Shown: one piece after another, positions 22,121 to 54,272 of the stretch
Layout of the letters: every line of letters begins with the position of its first letter
Numbering within the stretch: position 1 is the stretch's first letter
Source: Eukaryota sp. TZLM1-RC
Lineage: Eukaryota; Protista; Metamonada: BaSk clade
NCBI GenBank assembly: GCA_040285825.1
Contig: JAUPSS010000004.1
Coordinates: 124,001 to 188,000 of the forward strand
DNA: 64,000 nt
Reading direction: 5' to 3'
Made by a program: the position numbers and the translations under genes
The notes under the pieces: generated by a model
Databases searched by the model: none
The model's input: the letters and a program-made list of their open reading frames with translations, nothing else
Told to the model about the DNA's origin: nothing

Positions 22121-22176
22121 TCTTTGAAAAAGTTTTATTTGACCTTCATCTTGATTTGATTGATTTAGGGCTGGTG

Positions 22177-25100: not shown

Positions 25101-28100
25101 TAGAGTTCTGGGAAGGTCTATTAATAATCCTACAGAAGCATATTCTCCTGGCAAAGTTACTGGGTTTGGTAACAATGTTGATAGTATTGGGGGTGGTTTA
25201 GATGAAGCTTTTGTTTTATTATCAAATGGGGTTTTGTTTAGGTTTAGTCAGTTCAGTGATTTAATTCCTTTCAAAGGTAGTGTTCTTACTTCAATTTATT
25301 GCGGATTTTACCATGGTTTTGGTCATTCTCATTCACTTCCTTCTATTTCAGCATATGGTGACGATTCGTCTGTTAGAGTTGATGGAATTCTGGAAAATCA
25401 CTCTTTGGGAACAATTTCTATTACTCCACCTCTATTTGTTGACCAGAATGCACAAGTGTCAGCTGTCAATGGTGGAATCAAGTTTGATGGCATTGTACAA
25501 AATTCTGGAATAATTAATTCATTTGAAAATGTTGAGTTAATTTTTACTTTTGTTTTGAATTTGGAAGCAGGGCATGTTATTTCGTATTCACCAATTCTGA
25601 ATTACTTTGGAGTTGTGTTTTCTGGCTCTGGTTTGATTGATGCTGATATTCTACATTATGGCGAATTGTATTCAACAGGGTATATGGAAATGTCCAAAGA
25701 TGTCATTTCATTTGATTATTCAATAATTAAATTTGAATCTTTTTCTGAACCTCCCCCATCACTTTTTGTAAAAGGAAAAGCCATTTTACATTATGTTGAT
25801 ATTCAATCTGAAGATTTGGTCGGAAATTTTACCGCTGTTGATCTTGATTTAATTGGTGATGTTTACCTCAGCTCAATTTGGCTAAGTATTGTTGGTAATG
25901 GTAAACTTTTGTCTGGAAATTTACATTTAACTAATTCAAAAGTAATTATTGAAGATTCTGGCAGTGTCAGTGTTGACTCAATTCTTAATCCCGTTCTTAT
26001 GGCTTGGGGAGATGGTGGTAATGGTAAAACTGGAACGGGTACTTTTGTAAACCACGAACCTTTACCAGTTATTGTTGATGAAGTTTTCGATAGCATTGTA
26101 GGAGCAGACTTTCATTCCTTGGGTCTCACTAGTGAAGGGTTTGTTTTTAGTTGGGGTTCTGGATCCAATGGTCAATTAGGCTTTGGAGATTACCAACCCC
26201 GTTTTTTCCCAACACAGATTCCTTCATTACAAAACGTTGTGCAAATATCTGCAGGAATTTTGTTTTCCCTTGCAAGAACAGCAGAAGGTGATGTTTATTC
26301 ATGGGGGTTTGGACTTTTCGGTAGACTTGGTCATGGTGATTCAGAACCTAGATTATCACCAACCAAAATTGATAGTTTGTCTGGTGTAAATTACATTTCT
26401 GCTGGTGATTCACATGCTATTTCTATTGTATATGATGGTATTGTTTACTCTTGGGGGTATAACCATTATGGTCAATTGGGTTTTGAATCTGATTCTTCTG
26501 AGGAAGACACTCCTCGTGTAGCTTCATTTGATACAACTCCTGTCAAAAAAGTAATAGGATGTCCCTTTTTCTCTTTATTTATCACTGAGGAAGATCAACT
26601 TTTCGCCAGTGGTTCAAATGATCAAGGGCAACTCTGTGTGGGTGATACTAATAACAGATTTTCCCCTACTCCCATTAATAGTGTTTCTTCTTTTAACGTT
26701 GTTTCCGCTGCTTGTGGTTCTGGTTATACCATTTTTGTTAACGATGTTGGCGAAGTCTTTAGTTGTGGTAGAGTTCTGGGAAGGTCTATTTATAATCCTA
26801 CAGAAGCATATTCTCCTGGCAAAGTCACTGGGTTTGGTAACAATGTTGATAGTATTGGGGGTGGTTTAGATGAAGCTTTTGTTTTATTATCAAATGGGGT
26901 TTTGTTTAGGTTTACTGAGTTTAGTGGGGTAAGTTCTTTTGACGTACCCCCTGTTGGTCAAATTTTCACTGGAGATTCTTTCCTTTTTGGCATTTTTCTC
27001 AACATGCCTTCATTCCATGGTGACCAAGCTTCTTTATTACAAGTTTCGGGTTCACTTCAGGGTCTTGCTTCGTCTACTTTTTCTTTTCATGTTGCAGTAG
27101 ATGTTTCTGGAATTCTGTTATCAGCTTCTCATGATTTAATGTTCCATGAAAATTTAATTATTTCAGGATCTGTCGATTGTATTACTGATTGTAAAATTAA
27201 TCTCTTTCGTCAATGTTCACTTGTGGGTGGTGAAATTGCAGCCACTCAAGTGGTAATCAATTCTTATAGTAGAGTTTTGGGCTTTGGGTTCATCAATTCA
27301 GATGTAATTAATAATGGAATTATTGAACCAACTGAAGTTATAGAAATTGCTAACACTTTAACTTTACCTCATACTTCCATAGTTATACTAAACAACAAGT
27401 ACGGTAATGATGCTCAACTTTTGGTTGGGGGTACCCTATTCCTTGATGGTTTATTAGTTGTTGATTTTTCCCATCAATTGTTATCCAAAGGTTCTGTTTT
27501 TGCTTTACTTTTGTTTAGCAATTCAGTTGGTGATTTCAACTCTGTTGATCTTAGTTGTTCATCCTACTTTTTATTTAATCTTGGTGAAGATTTGTTAGAA
27601 TTAACAGTTTCAGAAGACATTGTATCTGATCTGAACCAAATTTCTTTCATATCTCCTTATGGAGCTAATGACGATTGCTGTGGTACTTTTCTATTGCCTT
27701 GTCTCAGTTTAAGTAGAATCCAATCAAGAATGGGTAGCCGCGGCACTGTTCATTTCTTTGAAGGTCGCTATTCTGAGCTGAACTTTGATGTTCCTCTCAA
27801 CGCAGTAGATTACCGTTTGGAACCTATTAATTCTGGTAATGAATTTCAGTTCACATCCCCAATTAAAACCCAAATGTCCTTTGTAATCTTTGATCAATTC
27901 AATATTCACTTTGAGGAAACAGAATTTCTTCACACAACTAGTTCTGTTGTTGAACTAGATAATGTGGTATTCACTGGTCACGTCACTGATTTCATTATCA
28001 GTGTCAGGTCTACTATCCGTATTTATGGAATCAATAGTTTTGTTGAAAGTCCAAATACTGCACTTTTTGATCTTGATTTGAGTACTTTATTGCTCAACAA

Positions 28101-31100
28101 TGCGTTGTTCATTAACAATTCATCATCAGTTATTGCAATTGAATCAACCTTGGATCTCAGTAATGTCGTATTTCAAGATCAACTTATTCAACATTATATA
28201 ATTAATATAGAATCTTCTCATTTGGATATGTTTAATGTGAGCTTCTCTGACATTGTAACCACTGGCTTTGACTCAGATTTTACCAAACTTTTGTCCGCCA
28301 AGACCTCCGATTTAACATTGAATTTGGTCACTTTGGATGGTGTTTTTGGTGGATTTTTTGATAGTATCGATAGTAAATGGGATTTGGATTCGGTTCAAAT
28401 TACCAATTCTGAAGCTTTGACTTTCATCAATAGTTTTTTTTCCAACATTGAACTTAAAAATGTTCAATTTAACTATTCTTTCGGCCAATTATTAATAGCT
28501 TCTGATAATTCAACAGTTTCTTCACTGTATTTGGTGGTTGAAAATTTGAATGTTTATGACTCTGTTTTTCAAATATTCGGGTCCTCCTTTAAGTCAGAGT
28601 TTCTCTCTATTTCAACTTCTGTTATTTCGTCTTTGTTGTTCTCTGAAAATTCTCTTATTGAATGGTTTAATGCTAATATTACGGATATTTATTTATCTAA
28701 TGGAAACTTGTTTGATTTTAATTCTTCAACTATTGTTTTGTCCAAAGTTATCATGCTTGGTAGAAGTTTTGACACTATTCCCAATGTATTTGATGGCTTT
28801 GTATATGCTTCAGTTATTCATGCAAAATACTCCACGCTTTCTATTAATGAATCCAATTTTATTGGTTTTCTGATCAATGAGAAGTTGCTTACTGAATTGA
28901 AGATGGAACACTCTAATGTTTACTTTTTTAATTCAAGTTCTCCTTTAGCCTTAACAAATCTTTCTATTTCAAATTCCACTATTTCCTTTTACACTGGTTA
29001 CCCTGTTTTGATTCGGTCTTTTATTTCAGATTTGGATAGTTATATTATTGGATCTGATAAGTATTTAAACCTTGACTATCTTGAAGAGGCTCTAGCTCTC
29101 CGAAAGGTCTGTTATTCAACAAAATCTACTTTATTGGAATTTTCTTTTCCCTTCGCTGAATTGATCAATTACTTAGTAACAATTGATGTTTTTCACTCAG
29201 TTAATGTTGAATTTTCTTTAGCAGCAAACATGTTCCATCTTACGCTTCATGACCTTTTTGCATATTCTATTCAAACAAATTTTATCAAAATCCTGTATTC
29301 CTCCCCCATAATACAGTTTTATTTAGACACTAAATTACCACTGTGTGAACCATCTGTTTCTATGATTTCTCCACCAACAAGAGGAGGATTGTTTGGCTTA
29401 AATGGTGAAAATCTGGGTCATCGTTCCTTATTAATTCAAAGTGACACCCTTGACCTGAGAGTGATTGGGGTCCCGGTAAATCATGACTCTGTTATTTTGG
29501 AAATTCCTCCCAGTTCTGGTTGCCACTATCTAAAATTAAGGAGAAGCGTTGATAATTCTACTATTACTGATATCCTTTGCTTTCAGCCCCCAGTTATTCA
29601 TTCTATTTTTCCAAATCCGTACCAACTTCAAAAAGAAATGAATATTAAAGGTGAGAATTTTGTTATTAATCCTGATTTGTTTGAGTTGACCATGGGAAAT
29701 TTACTGTTCAACTATTCTATAATTTATTTAGATTTTGATGAAGTATTTTTAGAAATTACTCAAATATGTGATCTCAACTTAGGGTCTGTTATTGCAAATA
29801 TTTCAATTTCCAATCAAATTTCGAATAATTATGATTTGGAGTTGAAATTTCCTGATCTCACCATTGATCCTCGATTCCTGAGCCCTTTGGATAACCACTT
29901 GTTATTACATGTAAATGGTGCAATTGATCTTAAAATTTTAATGGAATGTTCTCTTTTGGATTTCTACACCAATTTACCAATGAATTGGGAGCTAATTGGG
30001 TCAAATGTTTTTAATATTACTTTTGAAGCAAATGGTTTGGACAGTTTTCAATTCATTTTTCAAATTTCAAACAATTTTCGTCATTTTATTCAGGTCCCAA
30101 TTTATGCATTTTCGGCATTACCTCCTACGTTTCCTTGCTTAAAAGACAAGTTGTGTATAATAACCATTTGTTTAAAATATGACAACACAATAATAACTGA
30201 TTTTGAACCTCGTGGTAATAATTTTATCTTAGTCAAACATTACCATTACATTGACCAAGAGTGCCTGGAATTGGAATTAATCAGTTCTCAAGATGGGAAT
30301 ATTAATGATCTCAAAATGTGCAATAAGTTATTGTGTAATTCAATTGATTCACTTCCAATAATTGCCAACATCAACTCTGTTGCACCCCCAATATTCCAAT
30401 GGCCTTTTAAAGCTTTTACCTCTTCTATTGTTTGTAGTGGTAGTTTTCTTGATTCTTTTGATCAGCACACGTGGAAGTCGTCACTTTTGATGGATGGAAT
30501 GGCAGTTTCCCCTGTTATTAGTTCAGGTAATCTGACTTTACCAGTCTATTTTGATAAAATTTCCAATGCGACTTTGGAATTCTGTGGTTTTGAAGGTTGT
30601 TTTGTCTTAGCTATTATTCAATGTAACGATTTTGTTGTTGTATCCCCTATTTTTTTCCCTTTTTCCACACTTATCATTTACTCTCGATTTTCTTATTCCT
30701 CGTTAGAACTATTTGTTGGGAATTCACCTGTTCCTATCTCTGCTGGTGACAATCTAATACAATTAACAAACCAACCAGTTATTGTTTTAGATAATATAAT
30801 ACGCTCTAACTTGGTGCAATTTAATTCTTTACCTGATTTTATTGGTTTAAATGTTCCCTTCCAGATTGTTGTTGATCTTACACACTCTGACTTTGATGTG
30901 TCCATTTCTTCTGATTCTCATTGTTTTTCCAATTTCAGTTATATTGGTACTGAATTATCTATAAATATCCTTGGAGAAGAAATTGAATTCTGTGTTCTGA
31001 AGTTGAATTTAAATTACAACGAATCAATTTTATCTAAAGATTTAGTTTTCAATATTGTTGATGATCCTAAAATAGAGTTTTTGGGTCCTAATTATTTCAG

Positions 31101-39500: not shown

Positions 39501-39525
39501 AAACAAAGAGAGAGAAAAGGAACTA

Positions 39526-39571
39526 CTGTGAATTTCGCTTTTCATGCATTCTCCTTTGTGATTTTCACTTC
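39526..39571 (+). repeat. Left terminal inverted repeat of the IS630/Tc1-Fanzor transposon, preceded by TA
   Basis: CTGTGAATTTCGCTTTTCATGCATTC matches the reverse complement of 47842-47867 at 24/26; TA at 39524-39525. Confidence 0.8.
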
Positions 39572-39606
39572 TAAAGAATAATCAGAAATTTTCGACCTCC
39601 TTATCT

Positions 39607-39915
39607 ATGTTTGGTCCTTCTTCATTACCACCTTTTCCTCTCACTTTTGATGATTCATTCAACTTTTCGAATGCTCGGCCAACTTCTCCATCAACAGTTG
39701 ATACATCAAGTCCCGAAAATCTTGCATCTGACATAGTTGATGAAGCCCCTTCTGCCGTTATTTCGCTTTTCCCCTTGTCTTCTTATGCTCCTCGGCCTGT
39801 TGACGTTGCTTTTTCTTAAATCAAAGGTGGTAGACCTTTCTTGGAGAAACTGATCAATGTCTATGTTCCCTCTGATCTCCGAAATCTATCAGTTAGTACA
39901 TTCCAAGAAATTGTA
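39607..39915 (+). pseudogene. Probable N-terminal fragment of an IS630/Tc1-like transposase
   Basis: Directly inside the left TIR. RPFL..PSDLRNLSV resembles RPFL..SPDLKSLSV at the start of the minus-strand transposase, and both share AGACCTTTCTT. Internal stop at 39819. Confidence 0.45.
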
Positions 39916-39958
39916 ATAGGTTTATACATAGAGGAACTCGAAAAAAACAATAAACCAC

Positions 39959-40678
39959 CTATTCTTCCTGATGAACATGGAAAAAAAGTGTCCCTGTGAC
40001 CTCAATAGCAACAACAGCACTTACTTGGACCTGTAGCATTTCAGGTTGTACAGTGTATATGGATTGTCCTTTGGGAGAACGACCATAGGAACGAGCATTG
40101 ACTTGTGTTTTAAACGAAAGTTCATCAATAAAAACCAGTTGATGATGTAGTACAAGTCCAATGTCAAGCATATAATTAGTCTCTAACTTTGTTATAAGCA
40201 ACAACTTCGCCCTTCGGACAAGATTCTGGCACTTTTTGTATGAGTACCCATGTCTAACAAGTATTCTGTGAACAGTTGTTATGAAAATGGTTTTATTAAA
40301 CTTAGAGCGGACGAAAGAACGGATTTCTCGTAAGAAAGAAAGCGGATCCTTTTCAACGAAAGCTAGTAGTTCCTCTTCTTCTTCAGATGTCAAGATACAC
40401 CGAGAATCATGTGATAGGCAGTCTTCATCAGCAGATTCCTCCTCACTAACATAAAGACCGGCAAGTATCTTCTCCTGCCGTGTTTTGAGGGTTAGATAGT
40501 AGCTCACCCATTTACTGATGGATGATTGTGAAACTGAAAATAGTTCAGCTGTTTGTCTTTGTGTACAACCAAGATAAAGATAGGTGTACACAGCTCTTAC
40601 TTTGGTGTCTTCTGTGGGGCGTACAGACAGTGACTTAAGGTCAGGAGATGTCAAAAGAAGGTCAAAAGATAGCCCCAT
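39959..40678 (-). pseudogene. IS630/Tc1-mariner-like transposase, truncated in the DDE domain
   Basis: HTH TQRQTAELFSVSQSSISKWV; VEKDP..FLREI..TTVHRIL..GYSYKK; first catalytic D in LVFIDE; YGRSPKG; VSAVVAI. Stop before the second D. Confidence 0.85.
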
Positions 40679-40748
40679 AAGAAAGGTCTAGAATTGTAGA
40701 GGTCTAGAATTGGATTCGACCGATATTTCTGAAAATTGTAAACCTCAA

Positions 40749-41005
40749 CTGTGAAATTTACTCCTGTTTTTAACTTTCTTAATGTCATGTCCACTCACAG
40801 GCTGTAAGAGACATGTAGCGTCATTTGACAAAGACAATCATGATTTCATTAATGTGGTTCCTCACTTATATACACCTACTGCTTTTACAGAACAAAGCCT
40901 CACAACTTGATGTGTCTAGGTAAATCTACCAAATGTATTAGTAGCAATTGTTGATCGGTCTCAAAAGTTTTAGTTTGTTTTTGCTCAGGTTTTTCAATCA
41001 TCTTT
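40749..41005 (-). ncRNA. Second (degenerate) copy of the candidate Fanzor omegaRNA scaffold
   Basis: Collinear with 47595-47839, including a 52-nt block with one mismatch. Confidence 0.65.
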
Positions 41006-43600
41006 TTAACAGAGCTTTTGGGCAAATGTATCTCTCCGGACACAATTCCGCTCTCTGCTTAATTTGAACATTTTTTACAGTGGAATATCTCTGTCATGTG
41101 TTATGTAACACTCAGTAGGTATAACCATCTTCCATGAGACTGCTTGAATATTCTCATCTGCTTGTATTTAATTCAGTGGTTGAGTAGTACTTGACGTCCT
41201 TTTGATAACACCACCATTTTCTAAAAGCTTTTGCTGAGCGATATCGATTGATTTTTTTCGGTAATCAGGAGGGAAATCAGCAGAGCCTACAGCAAGGGAA
41301 AGTTTTTCAGGATACCCATCCAGCCTTGGAAATTTGTTGAGGCTCTCTCGGATCCATTTCTCCTTTCGTCTACGGTTGTCCGATTATCCATTTTGATTGT
41401 TTTCCATTTCTGGCGATTACTTTCCCCCTGACCAAAATCCAATGGTTTAAATATTGGTTGAAATTTTGAACGGAATATTGGTTGGAAAACTGTTCACTGG
41501 GTGAAAGTTTTGTCATGTATCTCCTGCATGTTAGACAAGGGATTACTCCACATTGATCATCATTTAAGAAGTAACCACATAAACTAGATTGGCCCAGATC
41601 AACACCGATAAGGAGCTTTTCAGGTATTGTTTCGACTGGATGTCTGCGTCTTGGCATTTTTTAGAACACTTCAACTGTTGCCGTAGGTCGGAAAGGAAGG
41701 GTTGGATAAAGACAATGAGGAAAAGTTGATTTATTTTCTAATCATAACATATAAGCCTTAGGGCGCCAACACTGCTTCTTCCCTTTTTCAAAATAAATCA
41801 ACGTATATGAATATAAAACAAAACTATAACAAATAACTCAATAACTATAAATACTAAGAGCTAAATACTAAATTCTAATGTTTTCTATTGTCTACAATTA
41901 TCTTTGTAGTGATTGGGATTCCCACAAACACTGGTTTCACATTTTGAAGATCGACAATTGATGTACTATGACTCTCCCACAATAATATTAGTATAAGGTA
42001 GTAAGCAATAACTGAAAAGGGCCTCGTTCCAAAATCTATGTGCTCGAATACTTTGTTGTGTATGTTTTAATCGCTCCATAAAGATGCTCTGCTTCTTCCC
42101 TTTTTCGTAAACGAGAAACGTGGTAGTGTTGTTTAGTAAAGGTATCATGGAATCGCAGAATGGATTCCCTGATAATTATGCAGGGTCTGTGTTGAATCAA
42201 AAACAACAGTAAGCAAAGTAACAAAGCTCAGAAACCTAAAGGCGGCGTCTTTTGTTGTTAACGTACTGGATTTTCGACTAAAAATATCAGAGGTACAAGG
42301 ACTGTATCTTTGCATTGTTGTACAATAACAGTGGAGGTGGAGTTTCTACTCGTAACCTCGTATTTGGTCGACCTTTCTCGTGTTTGGCGTGTCTGAGCTG
42401 CTCGAATGGATAAGAGTCCATTGATTCGAGGTAAGGCTCTGCGTCCTTGTTAGGAGTTTGTAGAATCCATCACTGGAGTCATCTTCCCCTTCCGTGGTAT
42501 GTACTCTCCTGAAGGGGTTGATTATGTAAAGTGGGGGTTCCATCCGTTTCTTTACTAGATGCTACATTAGGGAGGGGAGAGGGAACCAAGTCCGTTGTCG
42601 TGGCCTGCTCTGACTCTTCTGGGTTCTGCTTCCTTTGTGAGGGGAGAGGGAACCGGGTCCGTTCTCGTAACCTCTGAAGAAAAAACCATTTCCTTGAGAG
42701 GGCAGGAAGCCACGTCCGTCCTCTTAAACTCTATTAGGGTCTCCTTTAAAGTTCAAAGTTTGAAATCCAACGTTTCTTCCTCTCTTTGCAATTTGCTTCC
42801 ATAAAGGAGGGAGCTGCTCAAACAAACAGTAATCTGTAGATTCGAGGTGAGCCTCCGCGTCTTTCATAATTTGATGGCGAAGTCCTTTCTCTTCGTCATC
42901 CGATTTGTCTAAGACGGATTGAAGTTTTTCATATCCTTGAGGGACTGTCGAACTTGAACCAACATTTGCGTTTTTTGGTAAGGAACGGGGTGGTCCCATT
43001 TTTGAACCCTTTTGTGGTATTAAGTTGGACTTGGAAAAGGCGGCAGGCGGTTCCGAGCCTGGTTCCATCGGTTTTCCTTGAGGAGGGGCGGAGGTTGTCT
43101 TGACCCCGAGTCCTCGACTATACTAGTCTCTACTACTGCTCCTACTACTCCTTCTGTTGTCCGTATGCTAAATGTATCCCTGTCTTGTTCCTGCATGTTA
43201 ATTTTGACGGTGTCAGTATTTTGGCTGGAAGGGAATGACATGATATCTGCTAAAGATATCCTCTGTAAATAAAGCTGGGTGTTGTCAAAGTGGTATACCT
43301 ATTTACCTATATGGCCAATAATTATTGATGCCGTAGGTCGGAAAGGAAGGGTTGGATAAAGACAATGAGGAAAAGTTGATTTATTTTCTAATCATAACAT
43401 ATAGCATAACATTAGGGAACCAACACAAGTGTACTTCTCTGGTTTTGTTGGCATAAGGGTCACTTTTCAGTTCTTTTCTTGATATTCTTTTCCTTTTTGA
43501 TGGTTCGTCCAGGTTATTTGTGTTTACTGAATCATTATTTTTACCTTTCAATGTCAAAAGCAGGCCATTGCCATTTCTTTTTTCTGTAAAATTTTTTTCT
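41000..43600 (-). pseudogene. Degenerate second Fanzor copy (C-terminal half), split by an LTR element
   Basis: 41000-41675 encodes MPRRRHPVETIPEKLLIGVDLGQ..LAVGSADF..RYICPKALLKR and matches 46886-47594. 43426-43600 matches 46720-46890. Confidence 0.9.
41676..43425 (-). mobile_element. Non-autonomous mini LTR retrotransposon (1.75 kb, ~100-bp LTRs, TRIM-like)
   Basis: LTRs at 41676-41771 and 43326-43425 share a near-identical core and have TG..CA ends; purine tract GAAAAAGGGAAGAAGCAG before the 3' LTR; 4-bp TSD CAAC/CAAG; internal broken ORFs; 3' region homologous to 35400-35500. Confidence 0.85.
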
Positions 43601-44339
43601 GGTTATGTTGCAACGGAACCTTGAATAGACCTCCTTCCGCAACAAGTGTTTCTCTCTCAGTATTCTCTCTTGTTTTGGTTTCTGGTGTGTTTTTTATGGA
43701 TCGTTCTTTTCTCAATCATTCTAATTTCCCTCGCAAACCGTCTTTGCCAAGCCTTAGAAATCCTTCTGTACTCCTTTTACGTGTTTTCCTACTCATTGTT
43801 GGCCCTTTTTTACCTTACACTTGCTGTTGGTTGCCATAAATCAATTGTTCGACTCGTCCTAAACCCCACCACTCTCTTCGAATATGCCCATTCCTCTCCA
43901 TCGTCAGCTCGATTACAATCCAATTTTTCTCTTCTCTTAGACTCTGTCAAAATGGTTGATCAGAGTTGTTCACATTGCCTCAATTTCTTAAAACTTGAAG
44001 TAAGTTGTTTAAAAATTTCAAATTACCAGAGATTTTGGGATTTTGTAATTTAATGAAAAATGTTTGGAATTGTTTCGATCAAATTTCATTACCATACGAA
44101 TGGTAAAATTAGTTTTTTCAGACTTTTACCTTTTTTCCAGAATTTCAAGTCCACTTGTCTATTAGTTTGTTTGAATCAAATTAAAACTAAAATTCTCAAT
44201 TTGTATTTATTGATAAAATGGATTTCTTCCGTTTATAAAATTCAATTGTTTCACTGAAATAGAAATTGATTCCCATTTTTAAATTGTCTATTCAACCCAT
44301 CATAATTTAAAACAATAACAACATCCATGTTTTTTAGAT

Positions 44340-44525
44340 TGAACTACAACAGTTAGAAAATTAAAATCAAAACTAATGGGACTAAATTCAGGCAACAATC
44401 TCTTCATTGTTTTATCTTGAACCAATTTTTGAAAATCATCCAAAAAAATCCTGCTTCTACTGCTAGTCTTGCGTTTATCGACAATGAAAAAGCAACAAAA
44501 ATGTGGTGTGTTTCTATCTGGTTTC
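44340..44525 (-). mobile_element. CRE-like retroelement 3' fragment
   Basis: DKRKTSSRSRIFLDDFQKLVQDKTMKR; nucleotide similarity to 5570-5650. Confidence 0.65.
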
Positions 44526-45033
44526 CAGCTGCCACAACAACCCCTTTTGGAGGTCATCAAACAAAACAGCTGATGTAGATATCATGCTGTACAACCGATA
44601 CACGTGTACATTTTTAGTACTCAAAAAATTAATAAACATTTTATTCTATAATTTCTGAGAAGAAATCCTCGAACAAGCATCTATAAAAAGATGTTCATAG
44701 TTGAGATGAAGACTGTCTTTACTGTTAAACAAGTCCGCTAAGACAATTGTGTCAAACTAGACCAATTGGTTGACTAATCTTCAAACAAGAAGTGTTTCAG
44801 CTAGTGAGATATAGTAAATTGTGACAGAACGTAGTACAAAGTGAAAAACTTCAGCGAAAGTGGACACCATAAATAGTTAATGGAAGGAGAGCGACATAGG
44901 TTGATTAGAAGAGGGAATTGGCAGAAACATCCACGACTGGAGCAACAGAAATTGAAAGAATTAGCTCAGAGGGATTTTGATGGGGATTATTATTCAACCA
45001 AACGCCAGCTAGTAATTTGTCATTTTGGGATTC

Positions 45034-45384
45034 TTAGATTACTTCACACTCAAGTTGCTGGTTTAGTGATTGAACACTGCTCATTTCTTGGTTAAGTTGT
45101 GATATGTGCGCATCATGAGAGTGTAGAGACGACAGAGCAAGGGAAAGAGAGGACTGTAGTTGAGATTCAATTGAGGTAAGTTCTGCATTGATATCATGGC
45201 GAAGGTCATTGAGATCAGAACGAAGCGAGAACGCATTTGAAACCTTCTGGAGTGTGTCTGGAGCGAACAATACATCACTTACTTGTGGAAGAGGAAGATT
45301 ATGTGATTTGCAGTAGTTTTGATAAGTAGTGATTGTGTGTTTAAGCTGAATCACCTTGGTTTGTAAAGAATTGAGTTTAGACAT
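45034..45384 (-). CDS. Hypothetical coiled-coil protein (possibly truncated)
   Basis: 116-aa ATG ORF with heptad-like Leu spacing; the frame continues past the TAA. Confidence 0.4.
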   Translation of the reverse strand: MSKLNSLQTKVIQLKHTITTYQNYCKSHNLPLPQVSDVLFAPDTLQKVSNAFSLRSDLNDLRHDINAELTSIESQLQSSLSLALSSLHSHDAHISQLNQEMSSVQSLNQQLECEVI

Positions 45385-45639
45385 CGGCTAATAACACAAA
45401 ACGTCAAACAGTGGTAACCTGTTGAGATTAATGGAGGACGTGGATAAAATGAACTGAGATGCTGAACTACTCAGTTGGAGAATTCTTACAAAGTAAATGG
45501 AAAGTGTGGGAAAGTGTGGGAATAGTGAAAACCTCCCAAAACCAAGTTGAGGGTTAAAAACCTCCCAGAATAGGCAACCAGAAGTCGAAAATGGGTGACA
45601 AGTGTAAAATTTGATAGATGAGCTCTTTATTCTCACTAC

Positions 45640-47594
45640 ATGTCAGACACCCCCTCTGTATCACGTGTATTCACTCGGTCTTGTGCACTTAACTCGCTGC
45701 TGACCCCTGCAGCGGTGCAACAAATTCGGACTGACCTTCCTGTGGTCACCGAGATTTGTCATGAAGCGTCTTTATTACTTCAATCTTTTTCTTCTAAATT
45801 TTCCGTTGGCATCAAGAGGTTTAGTGGAACAGGATGTATGGTATCTGTTTATGACCGTCATCACCACTGGTTCTTTTCCAAAGCCTTCCACATCTAAAGG
45901 CCAACGCCAATTACTCCATATCTTTTACAATGGATTTCTTCCTGAATGCCCACAAGACAGGTCTCTTGTTTCTGTGTGGGAAAATTCTTTAGTGCCTTAC
46001 AGAAATTCATTCCATCTTTTCCTCAATGATTGGCTGCAGTCCCAGAACTGTAATTTTATCAATAGAAAAGGGCTTTCTTCTTATCTTGCCTGTCGTGCTC
46101 GTCAATTGGCCTCCAACGTTAAGACATGTTTACCCAAAATTTGTCAATCCTGGACAAAAACTTTATTCGTGCTCATTGTAGAGCCCTGAATAAAACAAAT
46201 GTCTTTGCAAATAATATTCTTTCACTTTTGCCAGATGAACTACTAGCCCAACCCGAGGAAGTAGTAGTTGATTCTGTTCTTGAATACCTCATCAATTTCA
46301 ATTTGAATAATTCAAGAGAAAGATTTTTTTTATTGAATGCATGTAGGTTTATCTTGAATCTCTTTCAAAGATTTCCTACCACTGCCTCCCTACTGTCCTC
46401 ACATGATAAAATCACTTTTTCATCAAAGGAAATTAGTGAGCTTTTTCTCTTCAATCTTAAAATTTCACAATACTTACTCACTTTCTTTTCTCATATGCAT
46501 TGCTGGAAGAAATTTAGAATAATACCTTTAGCTTCTCATAAAGGTTCTAAATTTATTGAGGTACCTTCACAAATTTTCCACTCTGTGAAAAAATTTCCAA
46601 TTATTGAAGGATCATCTTCCAAAACAAAGTTTATCAAAAATACATGTCTGAAACGAGTATTCAAACAATGTCCTTACCAAAAATTCAATATCAACAGAAA
46701 AAGTTTGAAAAATAGATTTAACAAAATTTTATTGAAAACTAATGGTAATGAACTGCTTTTGACCTTTGAAGGTAAAAATAATGACTCAGAAAACACAGAT
46801 GAGCTGGATGAACCACCGAAAAAGAAAAGAAGATCAAAAAGTGAAATGAAAAGTGACCCTAATGCCAACAAAACCAGAGAAACACAGTTGAAGGGTACTA
46901 AAAAATGCCCCGTCGAAGACGTAGACATCCAGTCGAAATTTTACCTGAAAGGCCCCTTATCGGCGTTGATCTTGGCCAATCAAGATTATGTGGTTACTTC
47001 TTAGATGATAATCAATGTGGAGTTATCCCTTGTCCAACTGGCAGAAGATACATGACAAAAAATTCACCCAGTAAACACTCTCCCAACCAATATTCCGTTC
47101 AAAATTTCAACCAATATTTGAACCATTGGAATTTGGTCAGGAGGAAAGTGTATTTGGAAAGTAATCGCCAGAAATGGAAAATAATTAAATTTGATAACCG
47201 CAGACGAAAAGAGAGACGGTTCAGAGAGAGTCTCAACAAATTTCAAAGTCTGGCTGGACATCCTGAAAAACTCTATCTTGCTGTGGGTTCTGCTAATTTC
47301 CCTTCTCATTGCCGAAAAGTCAATCGATATGGATCAGCAAGGGCTTTCAGAAAATGGTTGTGTTATCAAAAGGACGTGAAGCACTTGTCAACCAGTGAAT
47401 TTAATACAAGCAAAATGTCAAGTTGTTGCATGGCCGAGAATATTCAAGCAGGCTCATGGCAGATGCGTATTTGTACTGAGTGTCAAATAGTATATGACAG
47501 AGATATTTCCGCTGCAAAAAATATTCAAATTAAGAAGAAAGCGGAATTGTGGCCGGAAAGATACATTTGCCCAGATGCTCTGCTGAGGAGATGA
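45640..47594 (+). CDS. Fanzor (Fanzor1-like, TnpB-related RNA-guided RuvC nuclease), ~650 aa across three frame breaks
   Basis: N-terminal EICHEASLLL and ARQLASNVK; RuvC-I LIGVDLG; LAVGSANF; RuvC-II TSEFNTSKMSSCC; zinc finger CTEC; RuvC-III YDRDISAAKNI; NLS-like PPKKKRR. Frame breaks near 45790, 46157 and 46900. Confidence 0.88.
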
Positions 47595-47867
47595 ATAGGG
47601 AACGTGAGCATACAGAAACAAAAACTTTTGAGACCGATCTACAAATACCTTAGTAGCATTTGGTAGATCCACTTAGATACATCAAGTCGCGAGGCTTTGT
47701 TCTGTGAAAGCAGTAGGTGTATTTAAGTGAGGTAGCCCATTGATGAAGATCATGATTGTCTTTGTCAAATGATGCTACATGTCTCTTACAGCCTGTGAGT
47801 AGACATTGAGAAAGTTGAAAACAGGAGTGAATTTCACAGGGGAATGCATGATAAGTGAAATTCACAG
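47595..47867 (+). ncRNA. Candidate omegaRNA scaffold of the Fanzor, ending at the transposon right end
   Basis: Non-coding, conserved in the second copy, with hairpins at 47636-47669 (GATCTAC..GTAGATC) and 47779-47806. Its position between the stop codon and the element end fits TnpB/Fanzor architecture. Confidence 0.7.
47824..47867 (-). repeat. Right terminal inverted repeat, followed by TA
   Basis: Contains two AGTGAA(T/A)TTCACAG subrepeats and is inverted relative to 39526-39571; TA at 47868-47869. Confidence 0.8.
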
Positions 47868-47882
47868 TAGATTACTTCTTTG

Positions 47883-50800
47883 ATGCGTCCCTCTAACCGA
47901 TCTCGAGAACGTCCTCATCGCCCGCGAGGCGGGCGTCAGGGGCGTTCCCGGGGATCTTCAAAACGAGGTTCTTCCCGTCTAAGCAATTCAGACGAGTTTG
48001 CTACCTTCTTCAGAGATTCCATAAACAATGGTGATCTTCAAAGTTCAATCAATCGCCTTATTCACGAAGATCATTATTCATCGCCACTGAAAACCATCCT
48101 CAACAGCTCTTATTCTCTGGGAGCAGTATCACGCCGCTCCTGCTTGAGCATCCAACGTGTTGCTGCGGGATTCCTCAGGCTCCTCAGCAAGGATGACTGC
48201 CATTGCATTTCTCTCCTTCCTCCAATACAGAGGGATACTGTGCTCAATGAACTCCTTAATACTCCCTTCTTCGTCAATGTTCTCCACGCCCTCCACTCTT
48301 CTCCTAACGCTGACCTAACTGAATATGCCGCTAGACCGGAAGATTATACACCTTATTCCTTTGAGGAACTTCTGCTATTGATCTGCGGCATTATCAACAC
48401 CATTCTCTCCTCTATTCAAGGTTCTGCAGGGAGAGACGTGCTGACTGAGTGGATCATGAACATAAGACAAGTGGTTGGTAAACTTGAAAGAAAAGGTTTG
48501 GTTTCCAGTGTCGAATTAATTAGCCAAATAGAGAAATATGTTTGCTCTTTTGAAAAAATGCAAGATACTTATGAAGAAACAACTCAAAACACCAACCTTA
48601 TTCACCAGTTCAACTCTCTCTCCATTCCTAGTAATTCTACCATCAATATAGATCCTTCTGGCCCTGAACATTATTCAGTCAATGGCACTCCTAGACACGA
48701 TAATGATAAAGTTGATTATAGAACCATTCAAGTATTACCCACAAATAGCGAAGTCAGCTCCGTTTACTCTGAGTGTGAAGTTCCATGGCTACCTCATACT
48801 ATGAAAAGCCCAAGGTTTGAGTTTGCCAATCAAATTGATTGTCTTTTAGATCGTTGCTTTAGACTCTATCGTCATGAACTTTTGTATCCTTTTACTTTGG
48901 CTTTGGCTACTATTACTGCTGGTCTTGGTGAAGACCAAAATCAAACTCTCCCTTCAGATTCAGAAAAGGACCAATTAAAGTCTTGGTTTGTTTCTCAACT
49001 GACGAAGAGAGTTTCTTACATAAAGGATATTCAAAATCCTGGCTTTTCTGATTCAATTTCTTTATCGGTAATGTATGGTGTGGAGTTACACACAGTTAAG
49101 GCTGATATTAAAATGGGGATAATGTTGAATATTTCTTTTGATTTTCCATCAAATGTTGCGGCTAAAAATAGGGCAAAATGGCTAAAGGACAGGGGAGACC
49201 GAGTTTATGCTAATACTCAATTAGGAATTTATTTTGATGGGGCATCTTTATCATATTTTTTGTTAAGTCCATGTAAACTCCCTCAAATGGCACCTTGTAA
49301 AAGGAGAATTAGTCTTAATTGTACTGTCCCCCAATCAGAATACCCAAGACTGATGACGTGTCTTGGGTCAATAATGGGAAGAAAACAGAAGACTTCACAG
49401 TATTTGTTCCTTGTTCCTTCTGTTTTTTACCCAATGATTTTCCCTATTCTAAATGGTCTGCAAAAACTTAATGAACAGTCCTTTGCATTACCCCAAATAA
49501 TTGCCAGTCAGGACTGGGAAAGTTTGAACGTACCAAATTACTTAGCCAATCAGCAACTAAATATTAGTTGCTTATTCAAAGAAGGCTTTGTCACACCTGA
49601 AACTTGTTCTATTAATGATTTGGGGACATTAAAAGAAGCAATTCCTCCTGACTCAACTTGGTTAGACCCCACCCAATTGGATTCATTAATTCATTGTTTA
49701 ACTAATAATGTGGCTTTAATTGAAGGGTTTCCCGGCACTGGTAAAAGTTATTTGGGAGAAAAATTAGTTGAATTATTAATGAATCAACCATTCTGTAGAG
49801 GCATGCCTATAATGGTTCTTTGTTATACTAACCATGCAGCAGATCAGTTTTTGCTTGGCCTTGTTGAACAAAAAATTGTTCATTTAATGGACATCGTAAA
49901 GCTAGGAACAACAACAAAGCATGACGTGTTAAAATCAAGATTATTGTCCACTATTTCCAAAGATACTGGAAGGATCAATTCCAAAAGTACTGTTTTTAAT
50001 TTGAAAAATAAGTTTAAGAGAATTGACTCGGATTTAGAAAAGTTCATTTCCTCAAGACAATTCCTCTTACACTTCAGTTTCATCAAAGATCAGCTCAAAG
50101 CTTCCAATCCCTTTGCATCAAGGGAGTCAATATTGGAGGATTCGCGATTAGGACCTTTCTTCAAGTTTATTGGAATTTTACAAAATGATGATGGTTTTCT
50201 ACATCAAGGGAGGCCTCAAGCACGGTATAAACGGTTTATTTCTGAGATGGTCAGTTATATTAAACAAAATTTTCCCACACTAACCCGGTTTTTACCTGCT
50301 GCCTCTTTGGTAAACTTTCCAAATTCCAAACCATGCCCCTATTATTTTGTTAAAAATAATTGTTCCCGTGATGACTGTCATCTCTCTCACGACGCTGAAT
50401 GGGCTCAATTTGGTCAGTTTTTCTGCTATTCTTGGATGACAAAAGGGTCTTGTACCGACTCTCAGTGTCCTTGTAAAGCTGGTCATTTATCTAGATTTTT
50501 ACCCCAAATGGAATTTCCTTCAACATCCCCCACCATTCCTTGTCCTTTTCATATTATCAAAGGAAAGTGTGAAAACGATGAAAGATGTAGGTGGTCCCAT
50601 GATGAGGTTTGGAGAAGGTTTAAAAGATTTTTGTGTTTTCACTGGATCCTTCATGGAAACTGCCAAAAGGGAAACCAATGTCCTCAATCAATTGGCCATG
50701 TTCCAACACTTAGTCGAATTTCAGTAGAACCTGTTGAAGAGAGTGATTATGAAGTAGAAGTGCCGGATTCAGAGCTCCCAGGTTTGAGTTCAGATGTTGT

Positions 50801-53800
50801 TGAATCTTTAAAGTTTATTGATAATTATTTAGATCAAACCAATCAATATTTAGATTTCTATGATCAACCAATGGAAGTTAGAATTGCTCAATATTTAAAG
50901 GTTCGATTGTTTTTACTTGAGAAAAGTCTCAAAAAGTTTCAAGGCATTTTTGACGAGGTAGCTGACATCTCCCATCACTTTTCCCTTGCTAATTTCCAGG
51001 ATGACTTGGCTCACGCTAGGAAAGCAAAAGTAATTGGCCTAACCACATCTGTCGCTGCCAAGCAAATTGAATTAATTCAAGCGATTGCACCCAAGATTGT
51101 GATTATTGAAGAGGCAGGGGAGATCCTAGAGCCACATTTGGTCTGTGCATTGAACAAATCAATCGAACACGTGATAATGATTGGTGATGTCAAGCAACTA
51201 AGACCAAAAATCAACATTTTTGAGCTGAAAGGAGAATCTGGAAAAGGATATGATCTTGATTGTAGTACTTTTGAACGACTTATTAAGGCGAATTTCCCTT
51301 TTTGCTCATTGCAAACCCAGTATAGAATGCGACCTACTATTTCCTCTTTAATTAAACCATTCTACCCTGATATCACCATTACTGATGGTCCCAATACTCT
51401 GGAATACCCAGATGTTAGCGGAATGGTTCACAATTTGGCTTGGTTTGACCATGATTACCCTGAAGATGGGGATGGTGATGCCATGTCTAGATCCAAGACA
51501 AACAAATTTGAGGCTGAAATGGCCGTGAATTTGGCTATTTATTTACTAAATCATGGTTATTCTGGTGGTAGGATTACCATTTTAACTCCTTATTTGGGGC
51601 AATTGTACCTTATTTTGCAAATTTTACGCCAAACAAATATTAATATTGTACTAAATGAATTTGATTCTGAAGCAGTTCAACAATTAGATGATGAAGAAGA
51701 GAATCAAAGTGACCAAGAATGTGATCAATCAAACCCCCAATCAAACTCCCAATCAAAGTCCACAGTCTTGACTGGTCAATCTTCAAGTCACGTCAACATT
51801 GCCACTGTTGATACCTACCAAGGCCTTCAAGCTGATATTATTATATTTTCCTCTGTTCGTTGTAATGATCAGGGCAGTATTGGGTTCCAAAAGTTCAACA
51901 ACCGAATGAATGTGGCCCTTTCAAGAGCTCGCCATGGCATGTATATCATTGGAAATACCCTCACAATTGAGAAATTTCAAGCAAAACAACTTGCTAAGGG
52001 TAATAATAATTTTGTCTTTATAAGTAATGTTTTAAGTATAATGAAATCTCGAAATTTGGTTTTCAATTATATTGAAACTATTTGTCCAATCCATCAAATG
52101 ACCAATCAAATTTCTGATCAAAATGATTGGAAGAATGTCATCGGTGGTGGTTGCCAAGAACGTTGTAATTCCCGACTCGCTTGTGGTCACGTTTGCAAAT
52201 ACAAATGCCACGTGTCAGATTCCAGCCATTTAAATGTCAATTGTAACGAACCTTGTGCTAGATTGTGTCCTAGAGGGCATGCTTGTAACCTCAAATGTTT
52301 TGAAAATTGTAAATGTGTACAACCAATCACTCTTTCCCAGCCCAATTGCAACCATACCATCACTGTAGCTTGCCATGCTTCCTTTGATGAAGATAAGTTA
52401 CCTAAATGCAAGGTCAGGGTTAGAATTACTTTGCCTTTCTGTGGTCATTCAGTTGATGTAGCATGTCATGAAGCTCAATTGTTATTGAAAGGGGAATTCA
52501 AAAATGTTTGCACGAGTATTTGTGGTTGTGAATTAGAATGTGGCCATAAGTGTCTTAGTTCTTGTGGTGAGTGCTGTAGTCTATCTAAAACCGCAATTGA
52601 GGACAATTTCCACATTCCAAGAATCATTCCTAGAATCAATCATCCTAAGTGTCAGTCTCCATGTACAAAATTGCTTGATTGTGGCCACGAATGTTCCAAA
52701 CAACAGTGCCATGACCGAAGAGACTGTCCTCCATGTGAGAGTCAATGTAAAGCGGCTTGCATTCACCACCAATGTAAGGAAAAGTGCAAGGAACTCTGCG
52801 TGCCTTGTATTGAGCTCTGTGGTTGGTATTGCAAACATCAAGGTAGATGCAAACTCCCTTGCTCGTCACCTTGTAACAGAACTCCTTGCGATCTAAGATG
52901 TTCAATGGTTTTGGAATGTGGATGTCAGTGTCCAGGGCTATGTGGTGAAGCTTGTCCTTCAAGTGATTACTGTCAGAAATGCGGTAATAAAGGGGATGTC
53001 AGGGTGGATTTAATTGAAGGTAGAAGTTATTCAGAAATTGATTTAGACATTGATCGAGTTATTTTCCTTTCTTGTGGTCATTTTTACACCCTTGAAACAC
53101 TGGATGGTTTGCTTCAATTTAGTCTTTTCTATGACACTTCTACTTCTCCCTCCGGTATTTTACCTTTCCCTTCTCAGCTGCCTGATGATTTCAATCCTCA
53201 ATGTATTGATTGCAGGCAACCAATTAGGGGAGTATTTAGGTATGGCAGAATTGTGAACACTTTGGATCTTTGTAAGTTGCAAAAGAAGCATTTCCTCTAT
53301 GTAATGCATCATTTACCAAAGGTTCATTCTTTATATCAGAATCGATTTAATGCATTCCAACATAATCCAAGTTTTAAAGGTTTGACTTTTTTATTGAAAC
53401 TAAGTCATTTTACACCTCGTGTGGCCAAGCGTGTTGAGTCATTAAAACGTGTCAAGGAAGCTGCTCTATCCTTTTGTCAACGCAATAGTATTAATTCAAA
53501 TGAAGTGTTTTTAGCTAGTGAATTACCAGTAATCAGAAGTGAAATTGAAATGTCAAAGTTGTTTTTAAAACTTTATTCTGTTGAGGTTTTAGTTTGTGCC
53601 AGCGCAAAAATAGGGAATTCCCTTTCAATTGATGAAACTAATTTGAAGACAGTTTTGAATATTATATGCAAAAAATTCGGAATACAGAGTTCTGAGATTC
53701 ATGAAAAGATTGCACCTGAAAATTTCCAGTTTGTTTTGATGAATTATGCCCTTCAAGGTTTGGATCTTATCTTCGTCACTTTTGAAGATCTCAAAACACT

Positions 53801-54272
53801 TGATATAATGCCAGTCAAGTTTCACCACTTTGTTAAGGAAGTTTGCAGTATTTTACTTCGAATTTGCACTTTTCTACAAAATATTAATTTTTCTGCCAAT
53901 GTTAATTCAATCCTGGCATCTGTTGAACATTGGTTCTTGGACAATTCACCTTGTCAAAAGTTTTTGGATGATTTTAATGATATTAAGAGGAAAGTTATAA
54001 CTGAAGTTGACCTTGATGAAGTTCAGTCTGTAATCAAAGCACTTGGTTATAGTTTTGATTCAAAGCGTAGTGGATTTGGCAGGTTTAATTTTTGCCCTAA
54101 TGGACATCCCTATGTTATAGGTGATTGCGGAGGAGCAACCCAAACTGCCAGGTGTTCCTGTGGTGCTACCATTGGGGGAAGTGGACATGTGTTGCTCAGA
54201 GATAATGAAAGAGGTGGTAGTGCAAAGGAGTTTGCAGAGAAGATTGTTGCTAGAAGTATGGGACAGGGGTAA
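47883..54272 (+). CDS. ZNFX1: ZNFX1/Hrr1-like SF1 (Upf1-like) RNA helicase with NFX1-type zinc fingers and C-terminal RZ finger
   Basis: RHDND..YRTIQVLPT, LDRCFRLYRHE, IEGFPGTGKS, CYTNHAADQFL, IIEEAGEILE, QYRMRP, VDTYQG, NVALSRARHG; many CGH.C..CH repeats; CPNGHPYVIGDCGGA..C.CGATIGG.GH. Confidence 0.92.
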   Translation: MRPSNRSRERPHRPRGGRQGRSRGSSKRGSSRLSNSDEFATFFRDSINNGDLQSSINRLIHEDHYSSPLKTILNSSYSLGAVSRRSCLSIQRVAAGFLRLLSKDDCHCISLLPPIQRDTVLNELLNTPFFVNVLHALHSSPNADLTEYAARPEDYTPYSFEELLLLICGIINTILSSIQGSAGRDVLTEWIMNIRQVVGKLERKGLVSSVELISQIEKYVCSFEKMQDTYEETTQNTNLIHQFNSLSIPSNSTINIDPSGPEHYSVNGTPRHDNDKVDYRTIQVLPTNSEVSSVYSECEVPWLPHTMKSPRFEFANQIDCLLDRCFRLYRHELLYPFTLALATITAGLGEDQNQTLPSDSEKDQLKSWFVSQLTKRVSYIKDIQNPGFSDSISLSVMYGVELHTVKADIKMGIMLNISFDFPSNVAAKNRAKWLKDRGDRVYANTQLGIYFDGASLSYFLLSPCKLPQMAPCKRRISLNCTVPQSEYPRLMTCLGSIMGRKQKTSQYLFLVPSVFYPMIFPILNGLQKLNEQSFALPQIIASQDWESLNVPNYLANQQLNISCLFKEGFVTPETCSINDLGTLKEAIPPDSTWLDPTQLDSLIHCLTNNVALIEGFPGTGKSYLGEKLVELLMNQPFCRGMPIMVLCYTNHAADQFLLGLVEQKIVHLMDIVKLGTTTKHDVLKSRLLSTISKDTGRINSKSTVFNLKNKFKRIDSDLEKFISSRQFLLHFSFIKDQLKASNPFASRESILEDSRLGPFFKFIGILQNDDGFLHQGRPQARYKRFISEMVSYIKQNFPTLTRFLPAASLVNFPNSKPCPYYFVKNNCSRDDCHLSHDAEWAQFGQFFCYSWMTKGSCTDSQCPCKAGHLSRFLPQMEFPSTSPTIPCPFHIIKGKCENDERCRWSHDEVWRRFKRFLCFHWILHGNCQKGNQCPQSIGHVPTLSRISVEPVEESDYEVEVPDSELPGLSSDVVESLKFIDNYLDQTNQYLDFYDQPMEVRIAQYLKVRLFLLEKSLKKFQGIFDEVADISHHFSLANFQDDLAHARKAKVIGLTTSVAAKQIELIQAIAPKIVIIEEAGEILEPHLVCALNKSIEHVIMIGDVKQLRPKINIFELKGESGKGYDLDCSTFERLIKANFPFCSLQTQYRMRPTISSLIKPFYPDITITDGPNTLEYPDVSGMVHNLAWFDHDYPEDGDGDAMSRSKTNKFEAEMAVNLAIYLLNHGYSGGRITILTPYLGQLYLILQILRQTNINIVLNEFDSEAVQQLDDEEENQSDQECDQSNPQSNSQSKSTVLTGQSSSHVNIATVDTYQGLQADIIIFSSVRCNDQGSIGFQKFNNRMNVALSRARHGMYIIGNTLTIEKFQAKQLAKGNNNFVFISNVLSIMKSRNLVFNYIETICPIHQMTNQISDQNDWKNVIGGGCQERCNSRLACGHVCKYKCHVSDSSHLNVNCNEPCARLCPRGHACNLKCFENCKCVQPITLSQPNCNHTITVACHASFDEDKLPKCKVRVRITLPFCGHSVDVACHEAQLLLKGEFKNVCTSICGCELECGHKCLSSCGECCSLSKTAIEDNFHIPRIIPRINHPKCQSPCTKLLDCGHECSKQQCHDRRDCPPCESQCKAACIHHQCKEKCKELCVPCIELCGWYCKHQGRCKLPCSSPCNRTPCDLRCSMVLECGCQCPGLCGEACPSSDYCQKCGNKGDVRVDLIEGRSYSEIDLDIDRVIFLSCGHFYTLETLDGLLQFSLFYDTSTSPSGILPFPSQLPDDFNPQCIDCRQPIRGVFRYGRIVNTLDLCKLQKKHFLYVMHHLPKVHSLYQNRFNAFQHNPSFKGLTFLLKLSHFTPRVAKRVESLKRVKEAALSFCQRNSINSNEVFLASELPVIRSEIEMSKLFLKLYSVEVLVCASAKIGNSLSIDETNLKTVLNIICKKFGIQSSEIHEKIAPENFQFVLMNYALQGLDLIFVTFEDLKTLDIMPVKFHHFVKEVCSILLRICTFLQNINFSANVNSILASVEHWFLDNSPCQKFLDDFNDIKRKVITEVDLDEVQSVIKALGYSFDSKRSGFGRFNFCPNGHPYVIGDCGGATQTARCSCGATIGGSGHVLLRDNERGGSAKEFAEKIVARSMGQG

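Follow-up and report, generated by a model that had tools for sequence, protein, structure and literature searches.

The region analyzed here lies in a 64,000-nucleotide (nt) stretch (the window) of genome assembly GCA_040285825.1 from Skoliomonas litria TZLM1-RC, the type strain of this free-living metamonad (PMC11603281); positions are window coordinates throughout unless a separate locus is named. Positions 45508-47869 on the forward strand are a single copy of a multi-copy, 2.36 kb mobile element that is of neither the long terminal repeat (LTR) nor the terminal inverted repeat (TIR) type, and the sole gene of this element is predicted to encode a divergent RNA-guided endonuclease of the Fanzor1 type, within the TnpB superfamily. 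This copy (copy 1) measures 2362 bp, as delimited by blastn and comparison of ends against eight further loci (L001-L007 and L011). It comprises a 5' leader (45508-45639), the Fanzor1-like gene (45640-47594), whose roughly 651 codons are spread over four frame pieces, a post-stop spacer (47595-47659), and a conserved, structured 3' module (47660-47869) that is a candidate omegaRNA scaffold, so that the noncoding DNA that follows the stop codon, up to the right end, amounts to 275 nt. A second, decayed copy (copy 2) lies in inverted orientation between 39523 and 43598.

The gene is spread over four overlapping open reading frames (ORFs) in three different frames (45640-45897, 45761-46189, 46126-47004, and 46905-47594). 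The initial annotation had described a single frame of about 650 amino acids (aa), which is absent: the four pieces are linked by three 1-nt shifts. Its recognition of three RuvC motifs and a zinc finger was correct, and all of these are located in ORF 46905-47594. Within this ORF, the RuvC-I motif GVDLG carries the catalytic Asp (46962-46976), the RuvC-II motif SEFNTS the catalytic Glu (47394-47411), and the RuvC-III motif RDISAAKNI the second catalytic Asp (47499-47525); in an alignment with relatives and SpuFz1 all three fall in the catalytic columns, with the D/E/D triad retained. A zinc ribbon of the form CC...CxxC (47424-47483), identified from the sequence and a Pfam match to the TNB domain, lies between the second and third motifs. 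We regard 45640-47594 as one gene because the N-terminal pieces match full-length relatives, being homologous to their N-terminal two thirds, and because the protein of an internally deleted copy (P0004) joins its first 65 residues straight to the C-terminus. Three 1-nt corrections yield the frame of about 651 codons, free of in-frame stops. No other ORF with a family match was found inside 45508-47869, and the element contains no transposase gene.

Assignment of the protein to the Fanzor1 group draws on profile, motif, and structure comparisons. ORF 46905-47594 scores 29.9 bits with Pfam PF07282 (Cas12f1-like TNB), above the cut-off of 26.3. When the RuvC piece served as query in an exhaustive HMMER search, only 21 relatives were retrieved among 1.8 billion representative proteins, namely eight fragments from the same genome, P0009 (659 aa, 42% identity) and P0008 (382 aa) in the sister strain TZLM3-RCL, and weaker matches from Skoliomonas and from metagenomes; the close relatives among the 21 all come from Skoliomonas genomes. 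A Skoliomonas profile that includes the window pieces aligns with the metagenomic protein group at an hhalign probability of 99.5% (E = 1e-22 over 316 columns). The profile of this metagenomic group in turn matches the Spizellomyces Fanzor1 (8gkh) at E = 1e-23, the Parasitella Fanzor1 (PpFz1, 9cf0) at 2e-16, the mimivirus Fanzor2 (9b0l) at 1e-13, and TnpB at 5e-7, and a combined profile gives the same ranking of Fanzor1 over Fanzor2 over TnpB. Against solved structures, Skoliomonas-only profiles retrieve just TranC or Cas12m at about 1e-3, as weak TNB matches, and a phmmer search of the PDB with P0009 returned no match. An AlphaFold2 model of window ORF 46905-47594 reached a predicted local distance difference test score (pLDDT) of 76 and a predicted template modeling score of 0.70, and Foldseek matched this RuvC model to Fanzor2, Cas12f, TnpB, and SpuFz1 at probability 1.00, with query-normalized template modeling scores of at most 0.58. 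For full-length P0009 the model was of low quality (pLDDT 53.5) and was usable in the RuvC part only. The initial annotation had proposed a Fanzor nuclease, to be checked by profile and structure searches; these searches bear the proposal out, with a RuvC/TnpB fold match recovered by the Pfam TNB domain, by the profile chain to 8gkh, and by Foldseek. As judged from these sequence relationships, the protein is a divergent Fanzor1-type nuclease, placed by a homology chain that is transitive but strong; the homology to characterized Fanzor1 proteins runs over WED/REC-C plus RuvC and exceeds that to Fanzor2, TnpB, or Cas12.

Two other assignments were tried and set aside. Fanzor2 proteins are compact (about 400-520 aa) and closest to IS607-type TnpB, whereas the gene described here runs to about 651 codons and its N-terminal half is long and helical, and the profile match to Fanzor2 (1e-13) falls behind that to Fanzor1 (1e-23). 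A prokaryotic IS200/IS605 TnpB would be expected with a TnpA partner (Y1 or serine), for which the element holds no candidate ORF.

The initial annotation spoke of two divergent copies, which understates the family: at least 10 loci are spread over eight contigs of the assembly, and the second copy in the window is badly damaged. The eight further loci were reached via the genomic places of fragment proteins, and their spans are given here as the corresponding window coordinates. L006 is full length (45508-47869) and 92% identical to copy 1, and L007 covers the same span but is broken by insertions. L011 covers 45516-47631 with a 1.35 kb insertion, L003 covers 46091-47868, L001 covers 46383-47847, and L005 covers 46969-47868 at 98% identity to copy 1; L002 is internally deleted (L002:4001-5439, encoding P0004) and L004 is partial. 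Five intact right ends stop at a common point, which reads ...GTGAAATTCACAGT followed by A or T, with unrelated flanks beyond, and an extended 13-nt motif, GTGAAWTTCACAG, occurs at the family's right ends only. At the ragged left ends, homology begins at 45508 in copy 1, 63 more bases are common to L002 and L007 and 24 to L006, and copy 1 may be slightly 5'-truncated. Neither an inverted partner of the right-end motif at the left ends nor a TA duplication was found. Immediately downstream of the L002 copy, a gene encodes a DNA_pol_B_exo1 domain.

The collinear 3' flank on which the initial annotation had built its case is real, the 275 nt after the stop codon matching 41002-40749 of the inverted copy. 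Identity between these two window copies is 84% in the 3' flank and 86% in the coding part. The block 47749-47800, singled out earlier as differing at one of 52 positions, is indeed 51/52 identical, although a coding stretch (47083-47141) is nearly as clean, and in permutations a 52-nt window with at most one mismatch arose in 23% of cases (p = 0.23); on two copies, then, the claimed excess of conservation over the coding part does not hold. A tree-based count over seven copies put 47660-47839 at 0.21 events per site and the coding part at 0.30, a mild deficit, with p = 0.018 if the block is taken as chosen beforehand and 0.11 scan-wide. This count is dominated by two old copies (copy 2 and L007) and initially suggested near-neutral decay.

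That reading was reversed by a later rate test, in which differences were split by copy age and into synonymous and nonsynonymous changes. Set against the family consensus, the single-base codon changes of copy 1 comprise 39 synonymous and 27 nonsynonymous ones, with no stops, a ratio of nonsynonymous to synonymous differences (pN/pS) of 0.19. The other copies have pN/pS values of 0.25-0.58 and one or two stops apiece, the exception being copy 2 with no stops in the 272 codons compared. With pN/pS this low, much of the divergence arose under selection, in active element lineages. The test used seven copies, with the adjacent coding stretch as yardstick and private differences pooled over the five younger copies. 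Codon positions 1, 2, and 3 differ at 27/1031 (2.6%), 24/1030 (2.3%), and 40/1031 (3.9%) sites, respectively. The spacer (47595-47659) differs at 8/325 (2.5%), close to the rate of codon positions 1 and 2 and showing no extra constraint, and the last 30 nt (47840-47869) differ at 4/127 (3.1%). The module from 47660 to 47839 differs at only 8/900 (0.9%), and within the stretch 47651-47772 there is not one private difference in the five younger copies. The module is thus 4.4 times slower than third codon positions (Fisher p = 1.4e-5), and it is also slower than Nei-Gojobori synonymous sites (5.0%, p = 1e-6), second positions (p = 0.02), and the spacer (p = 0.04). In the old copies, L007 and copy 2, the module decays at about the synonymous rate, as expected after the death of a copy. 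The constraint on the 3' module thus acts at the element level, and the conservation first claimed for it is right in substance, by way of the wider family.

The module is also predicted to fold. For 47655-47869 on the forward strand the predicted free energy is -65.6 kcal/mol (z = -3.68), and none of 200 shuffled sequences was as stable; z is -2.07 for the opposite strand and -3.0 for the corresponding stretch of L006. The predicted parts are a branched long stem (approximately 47667-47733), hairpins at approximately 47740-47768 and at 47779-47806, an A-rich linker, and a terminal hairpin (47827-47867), which is built from the complementary 11-nt motif pair GTGAATTTCAC / GTGAAATTCAC and stops 2 nt short of the right end. 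A consensus fold from seven copies retains the predicted stem elements. In the hairpin at 47779-47806, one U-A pair becomes U-G in copy 2 (pair 301/318), which is the pairing-preserving A-to-G change pointed out in the initial annotation; it is offset by one broken pair in each of L006 and L007 and by a 5-nt insertion in copy 2. Pattern scans of metagenomes with short motifs from 47689-47780, made in search of relatives, gave no match.

In SpuFz1 the omegaRNA corresponds to a conserved stretch reaching to the right inverted repeat, and transcripts continue for 14-15 variable nt (PMC10432273), and omegaRNAs of the Fanzor1 group have two to four stem-loops in total (a first one, SL1, plus one to three before the guide) and are very variable in length (PMC11423790). 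Because the module occupies the same position as the SpuFz1 omegaRNA, is under element-level selection, and folds on the sense strand, 47660-47869 is probably the omegaRNA scaffold of this family. The idea had been put forward from the two window copies alone; it gains from the seven-copy rate test and the strand-specific fold, and nothing from the 51/52 block or the G-U change.

Several observations weigh against this interpretation. The Fanzor1 assignment is itself transitive, because a Skoliomonas-only profile reaches solved structures weakly. The decayed copy 2 does not yield a more stable fold than its shuffles (z = 0). The covariation check proposed in the initial annotation found compensatory changes at 0/95 predicted pairs across the seven copies, a test without power because the copies are too similar; within the module, seven cells keep pairing by wobble and 23 break, about the neutral expectation. 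An Rfam scan of 47300-47950 returned no match. Furthermore, the 3' tail of the closest full-length relatives, which are genes of TZLM3-RCL joined to an XPG-type nuclease (described below), extends about 52 nt after the stop codon and has no similarity to the module; as this tail is unrelated, the module is family-specific and no cross-family test is possible. Finally, low diversity in the module could mimic constraint through recombination, if a 3' end had swept among the elements.

A different question is whether copy 1 is still alive. As assembled, it is unable to make the protein because of three 1-nt frameshifts, and it would therefore be inactive; all copies found in the S. litria genome are broken, so that the activity envisaged for a consensus protein in the initial annotation is a proposal, and copy 2 is long dead. 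The causes of the frame breaks were read from comparison of copy 1 with six other copies. The first break is a T5 run (45786-45790) that has one base fewer in three other copies, the second an A5 run (46151-46155) that has 6 bases in other copies, and both are private to copy 1. The third is an A6 run (46900-46905) that is found also in copy 2, L006, and L001 and that is replaced by an in-frame A7 in L003 and L007. The assembly is based on R9 Nanopore reads (41x), with Illumina reads used for correction (PMC11316075), and it is conceivable that the gene of copy 1 is intact and possibly active, the frameshifts being homopolymer-length errors of a Nanopore-based assembly. All four indels of copy 1 against the in-frame consensus fit such errors, each being a single base in a homopolymer run (G3/4 in the leader, T4/5, A5/6, and A6/7), whereas among the 16 private indels in the other copies there are events of 2-53 nt and sites outside homopolymers. 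The breaks also sit in stretches identical among copies, where short reads map ambiguously and polishing is weakest, and copy 1 is without a stop in 643 codons and has the lowest pN/pS of the family. On the other hand, the long host ORFs of the window (2130 and 3944 aa) are intact, from which it follows that polishing generally worked; homopolymers are also where natural indels arise fastest, and a young dead copy would look no different; and the RNA-seq-guided gene models of the annotators split the locus too. We consider an intact copy 1 a possibility of some substance, although the unlikelier of the two states.

The constraint on the module also admits another explanation, in which the module is a cis-acting DNA signal, either a right-end site for a transposase or a promoter or leader for the downstream gene, and not a guide-RNA scaffold. 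Transposon ends are conserved in general, and the 5' leader of this element also changes more slowly than synonymous sites, with a per-copy difference from the family consensus of 1.5-4.5% against about 10% at synonymous sites of the gene. The palindromic terminal motif pair could equally form a DNA hairpin. In addition, for three of four intact right ends of the family an annotated gene in the same orientation starts 14-64 nt further downstream, the distances from right end to start codon being 14 nt in the window (47869-47883), 38 nt at L005:6199-6238, and 64 nt at L003:6368-6433; L006 is the exception, its next gene lying on the opposite strand. However, the module, at about 210 nt, is long for a site of end recognition, and the fold is clearly better on the sense strand, the predicted stems having nine G-U pairs that would become A-C mismatches on the other strand. 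The pN/pS values well below 1 place most of the divergence in active lineages, before insertion, and because most divergence preceded insertion, host selection on single copies cannot explain the low rate of the module. Characterized omegaRNAs of TnpB and Fanzor systems, moreover, all occupy exactly this location (PMC10432273). A pure DNA signal is thus rather improbable, and the omegaRNA scaffold remains our preferred interpretation of 47660-47869.

A course of events can be proposed. The family was active long enough for its lineages to diverge while the protein was under purifying selection, and the last 210 nt before the right end were under selection at least as strong as that on the protein. 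By analogy with characterized Fanzor1 and TnpB systems, the 3' module most likely forms the omegaRNA scaffold as part of a sense-strand transcript; 15-20 nt of flank past the right end would then serve as guide, and the nuclease would cut element-free copies of the insertion site. For copy 1 the putative guide source, taken from the arrangement described by Saito et al. 2023 (PMC10432273), would be 47870-47889, which includes the ATG at 47883 and so would lie across the start of the ZNFX1-like helicase gene. The analysis shows the homology, protein fold, catalytic residues, copy structure, and boundaries of the element, the selection on protein and 3' module, and the predicted RNA fold, whereas we infer transcription, RNA processing, protein-RNA binding, guide use, and cleavage. 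It could further be speculated that copy 1 is alive, its frameshifts being homopolymer errors of the assembly, and that it represents an uncharacterized metamonad Fanzor1 lineage with an unusually long omegaRNA of about 210 nt, a natural guide formed by the first bases of a host gene (the start of the ZNFX1-like helicase), and a habit of settling directly upstream of start codons; taken together, this combination is distinctly unlikely.

The A6 junction, which lies upstream of the RuvC domain, could in principle be a site of programmed -1 ribosomal frameshifting or transcriptional slippage, so that copies with A6 would be functional. Its occurrence in four copies scattered across the family tree would suit such a role. 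The in-frame A7 of L003 and L007 would not, and the proteins P0001, P0007, and P0023 (the last annotated at L011) run uninterrupted across the site, as do the sister-strain relatives. Read in the zero frame, the context is U_AAA_AAA, which departs from the canonical X_XXY_YYZ heptamer, and copy 1 requires two further frame corrections in any case. Programmed frameshifting is thus very improbable; since A7 copies and continuous relatives exist, we read A6 as recurrent slippage or error.

Copy 2 lies on the reverse strand in three homologous pieces (43598-43426, 41678-40749, and 39563-39523). It has nothing corresponding to copy 1 before position 46720, being 5'-truncated, and it carries six indels in its RuvC part; at 81-86% identity to copy 1, it is much older. 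Two insertions interrupt it, both on the reverse strand. The first, of LTR type (41679-43425, 1.75 kb), has 78-nt direct repeats at 41676-41753 and 43326-43403, which are 99% identical and 1650 bp apart; it resembles a short-LTR element without reverse transcriptase. The second (39564-40748, 1.2 kb) lies in the right end of copy 2 and contains a truncated ORF for a transposase with helix-turn-helix and DDE_3 (Tc1/IS630-type) domains (39959-40678). Beyond it the homology to copy 1 picks up again at 39563-39523, ending at the position that corresponds to the right end of copy 1 (47869/39523). Copies of the 13-nt right-end motif lie on both sides of the DDE_3 insertion, whose own ends are weakly similar in inverse orientation. 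A reading of 39524-47869 as one composite Tc1/IS630-type element, in which two mutually inverted right ends would be TIRs around the DDE_3 fragment and the Fanzor gene, is rejected as extremely improbable because the DDE_3 segment lies beside no other Fanzor copy, while solitary 2.4 kb copies elsewhere are bounded by the same right end, left ends have no inverted partner, and copy 2 is an independent, older, 5'-truncated copy.

Directly downstream of the element lies the host gene whose start would fall within the putative guide. The ZNFX1-like helicase (47883-54272, forward strand) is an intron-less gene for a protein of 2129 aa with AAA_11 and AAA_12 domains and a C-terminal RZ-type zinc finger, its annotated start being the ATG 14 nt past the Fanzor right end. 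The encoded protein agrees at every residue with its annotation on contig JAUPSS010000004.1 of GCA_040285825.1. Elsewhere in the window, an uninterrupted ORF of 3944 aa occupies 22156-33990 on the forward strand.

The closest Fanzor relatives are found in the sister strain TZLM3-RCL (GCA_040285805.1), where an XPG_N/XPG_I nuclease domain of the FEN1/XPG type lies directly upstream of them at three loci (L008:2878-6980, L009:1972-5149, and L010:3986-6955). At L010, the C-terminal half of the XPG-like protein and the Fanzor N-terminus are joined in a single uninterrupted ORF, and the intact gene would therefore be a natural fusion of an XPG nuclease with a Fanzor, of about 1,300 aa; in this sister-strain family the distance from right end to start codon is 3 nt (L010:6996-6999). 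We found no report linking Fanzor with XPG in the searchable literature. At L008, a 2A-like sequence, DVEPNPG, immediately precedes the MGIKNLL start of XPG_N. TZLM3-RCL also has two other Fanzor families, one of 592 aa (P0011, P0024, and P0027-P0031) and one of 604-605 aa (P0019, P0041, P0043, and P0045), each with several full-length proteins of equal length in 90% identity clusters. On these sequences the two families look intact and recently active, which recommends them over the broken S. litria copies for biochemical work.

Comparison with known systems helps to place the element. It resembles SpuFz1 (PDB 8GKH) in its TnpB-type RuvC domain with D/E/D, its zinc-ribbon TNB domain, its helical N-terminal half, and its length of about 650 aa, and likewise belongs to a eukaryotic multi-copy element. 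It differs in that the similarity is detectable only via intermediate profiles, that the conserved tail is about 210 nt as opposed to about 75 nt in SpuFz1, that neither terminal inverted repeats nor an associated transposase was found, and that copy 1 is frame-shifted. The omegaRNA of GtFz1 from Guillardia theta likewise has a long scaffold, in which several stem-loops separate the first stem-loop from the guide (PMC11423790), comparable to the four stem elements predicted here, a likeness to the predicted fold of the module with no link in sequence or covariation. With ISDra2 TnpB of the IS200/IS605 group the element would share the order of a RuvC nuclease gene, a scaffold ending at the right end, and a guide in the flank (the latter two predicted here), and it shares a predicted hairpin near the right end and the absence of inverted repeats; unlike ISDra2, it has no TnpA-type transposase, a eukaryotic host, and a longer protein, and solved TnpBs match the S. 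litria family in the TNB/RuvC-III region only. The XPG-Fanzor genes of TZLM3-RCL (P0009, P0008, and P0022 at L008-L010) are the closest full-length relatives, with 42-44% identity in the RuvC part and collinearity over the whole Fanzor length, and are set apart by the XPG_N/XPG_I domain upstream in the same ORF and by their short, unrelated tail.

In conclusion, the S. litria element is a new, very divergent member of the Fanzor1 group with a probable long omegaRNA, as opposed to a new kind of system. The searchable literature holds no report of a Fanzor from Skoliomonas or any other metamonad. Fanzors, as the counterparts of TnpB and Cas12 in eukaryotes, are under development as compact genome editors. 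What this analysis adds is a homology chain to solved Fanzor1 structures, exact element boundaries, a quantitative test of selection by which the candidate scaffold is narrowed to about 47660-47869, and the caveat of assembly error. The delimited 3' module under purifying selection gives this family a concrete candidate scaffold, which could be taken forward alongside a frame-corrected or consensus protein.

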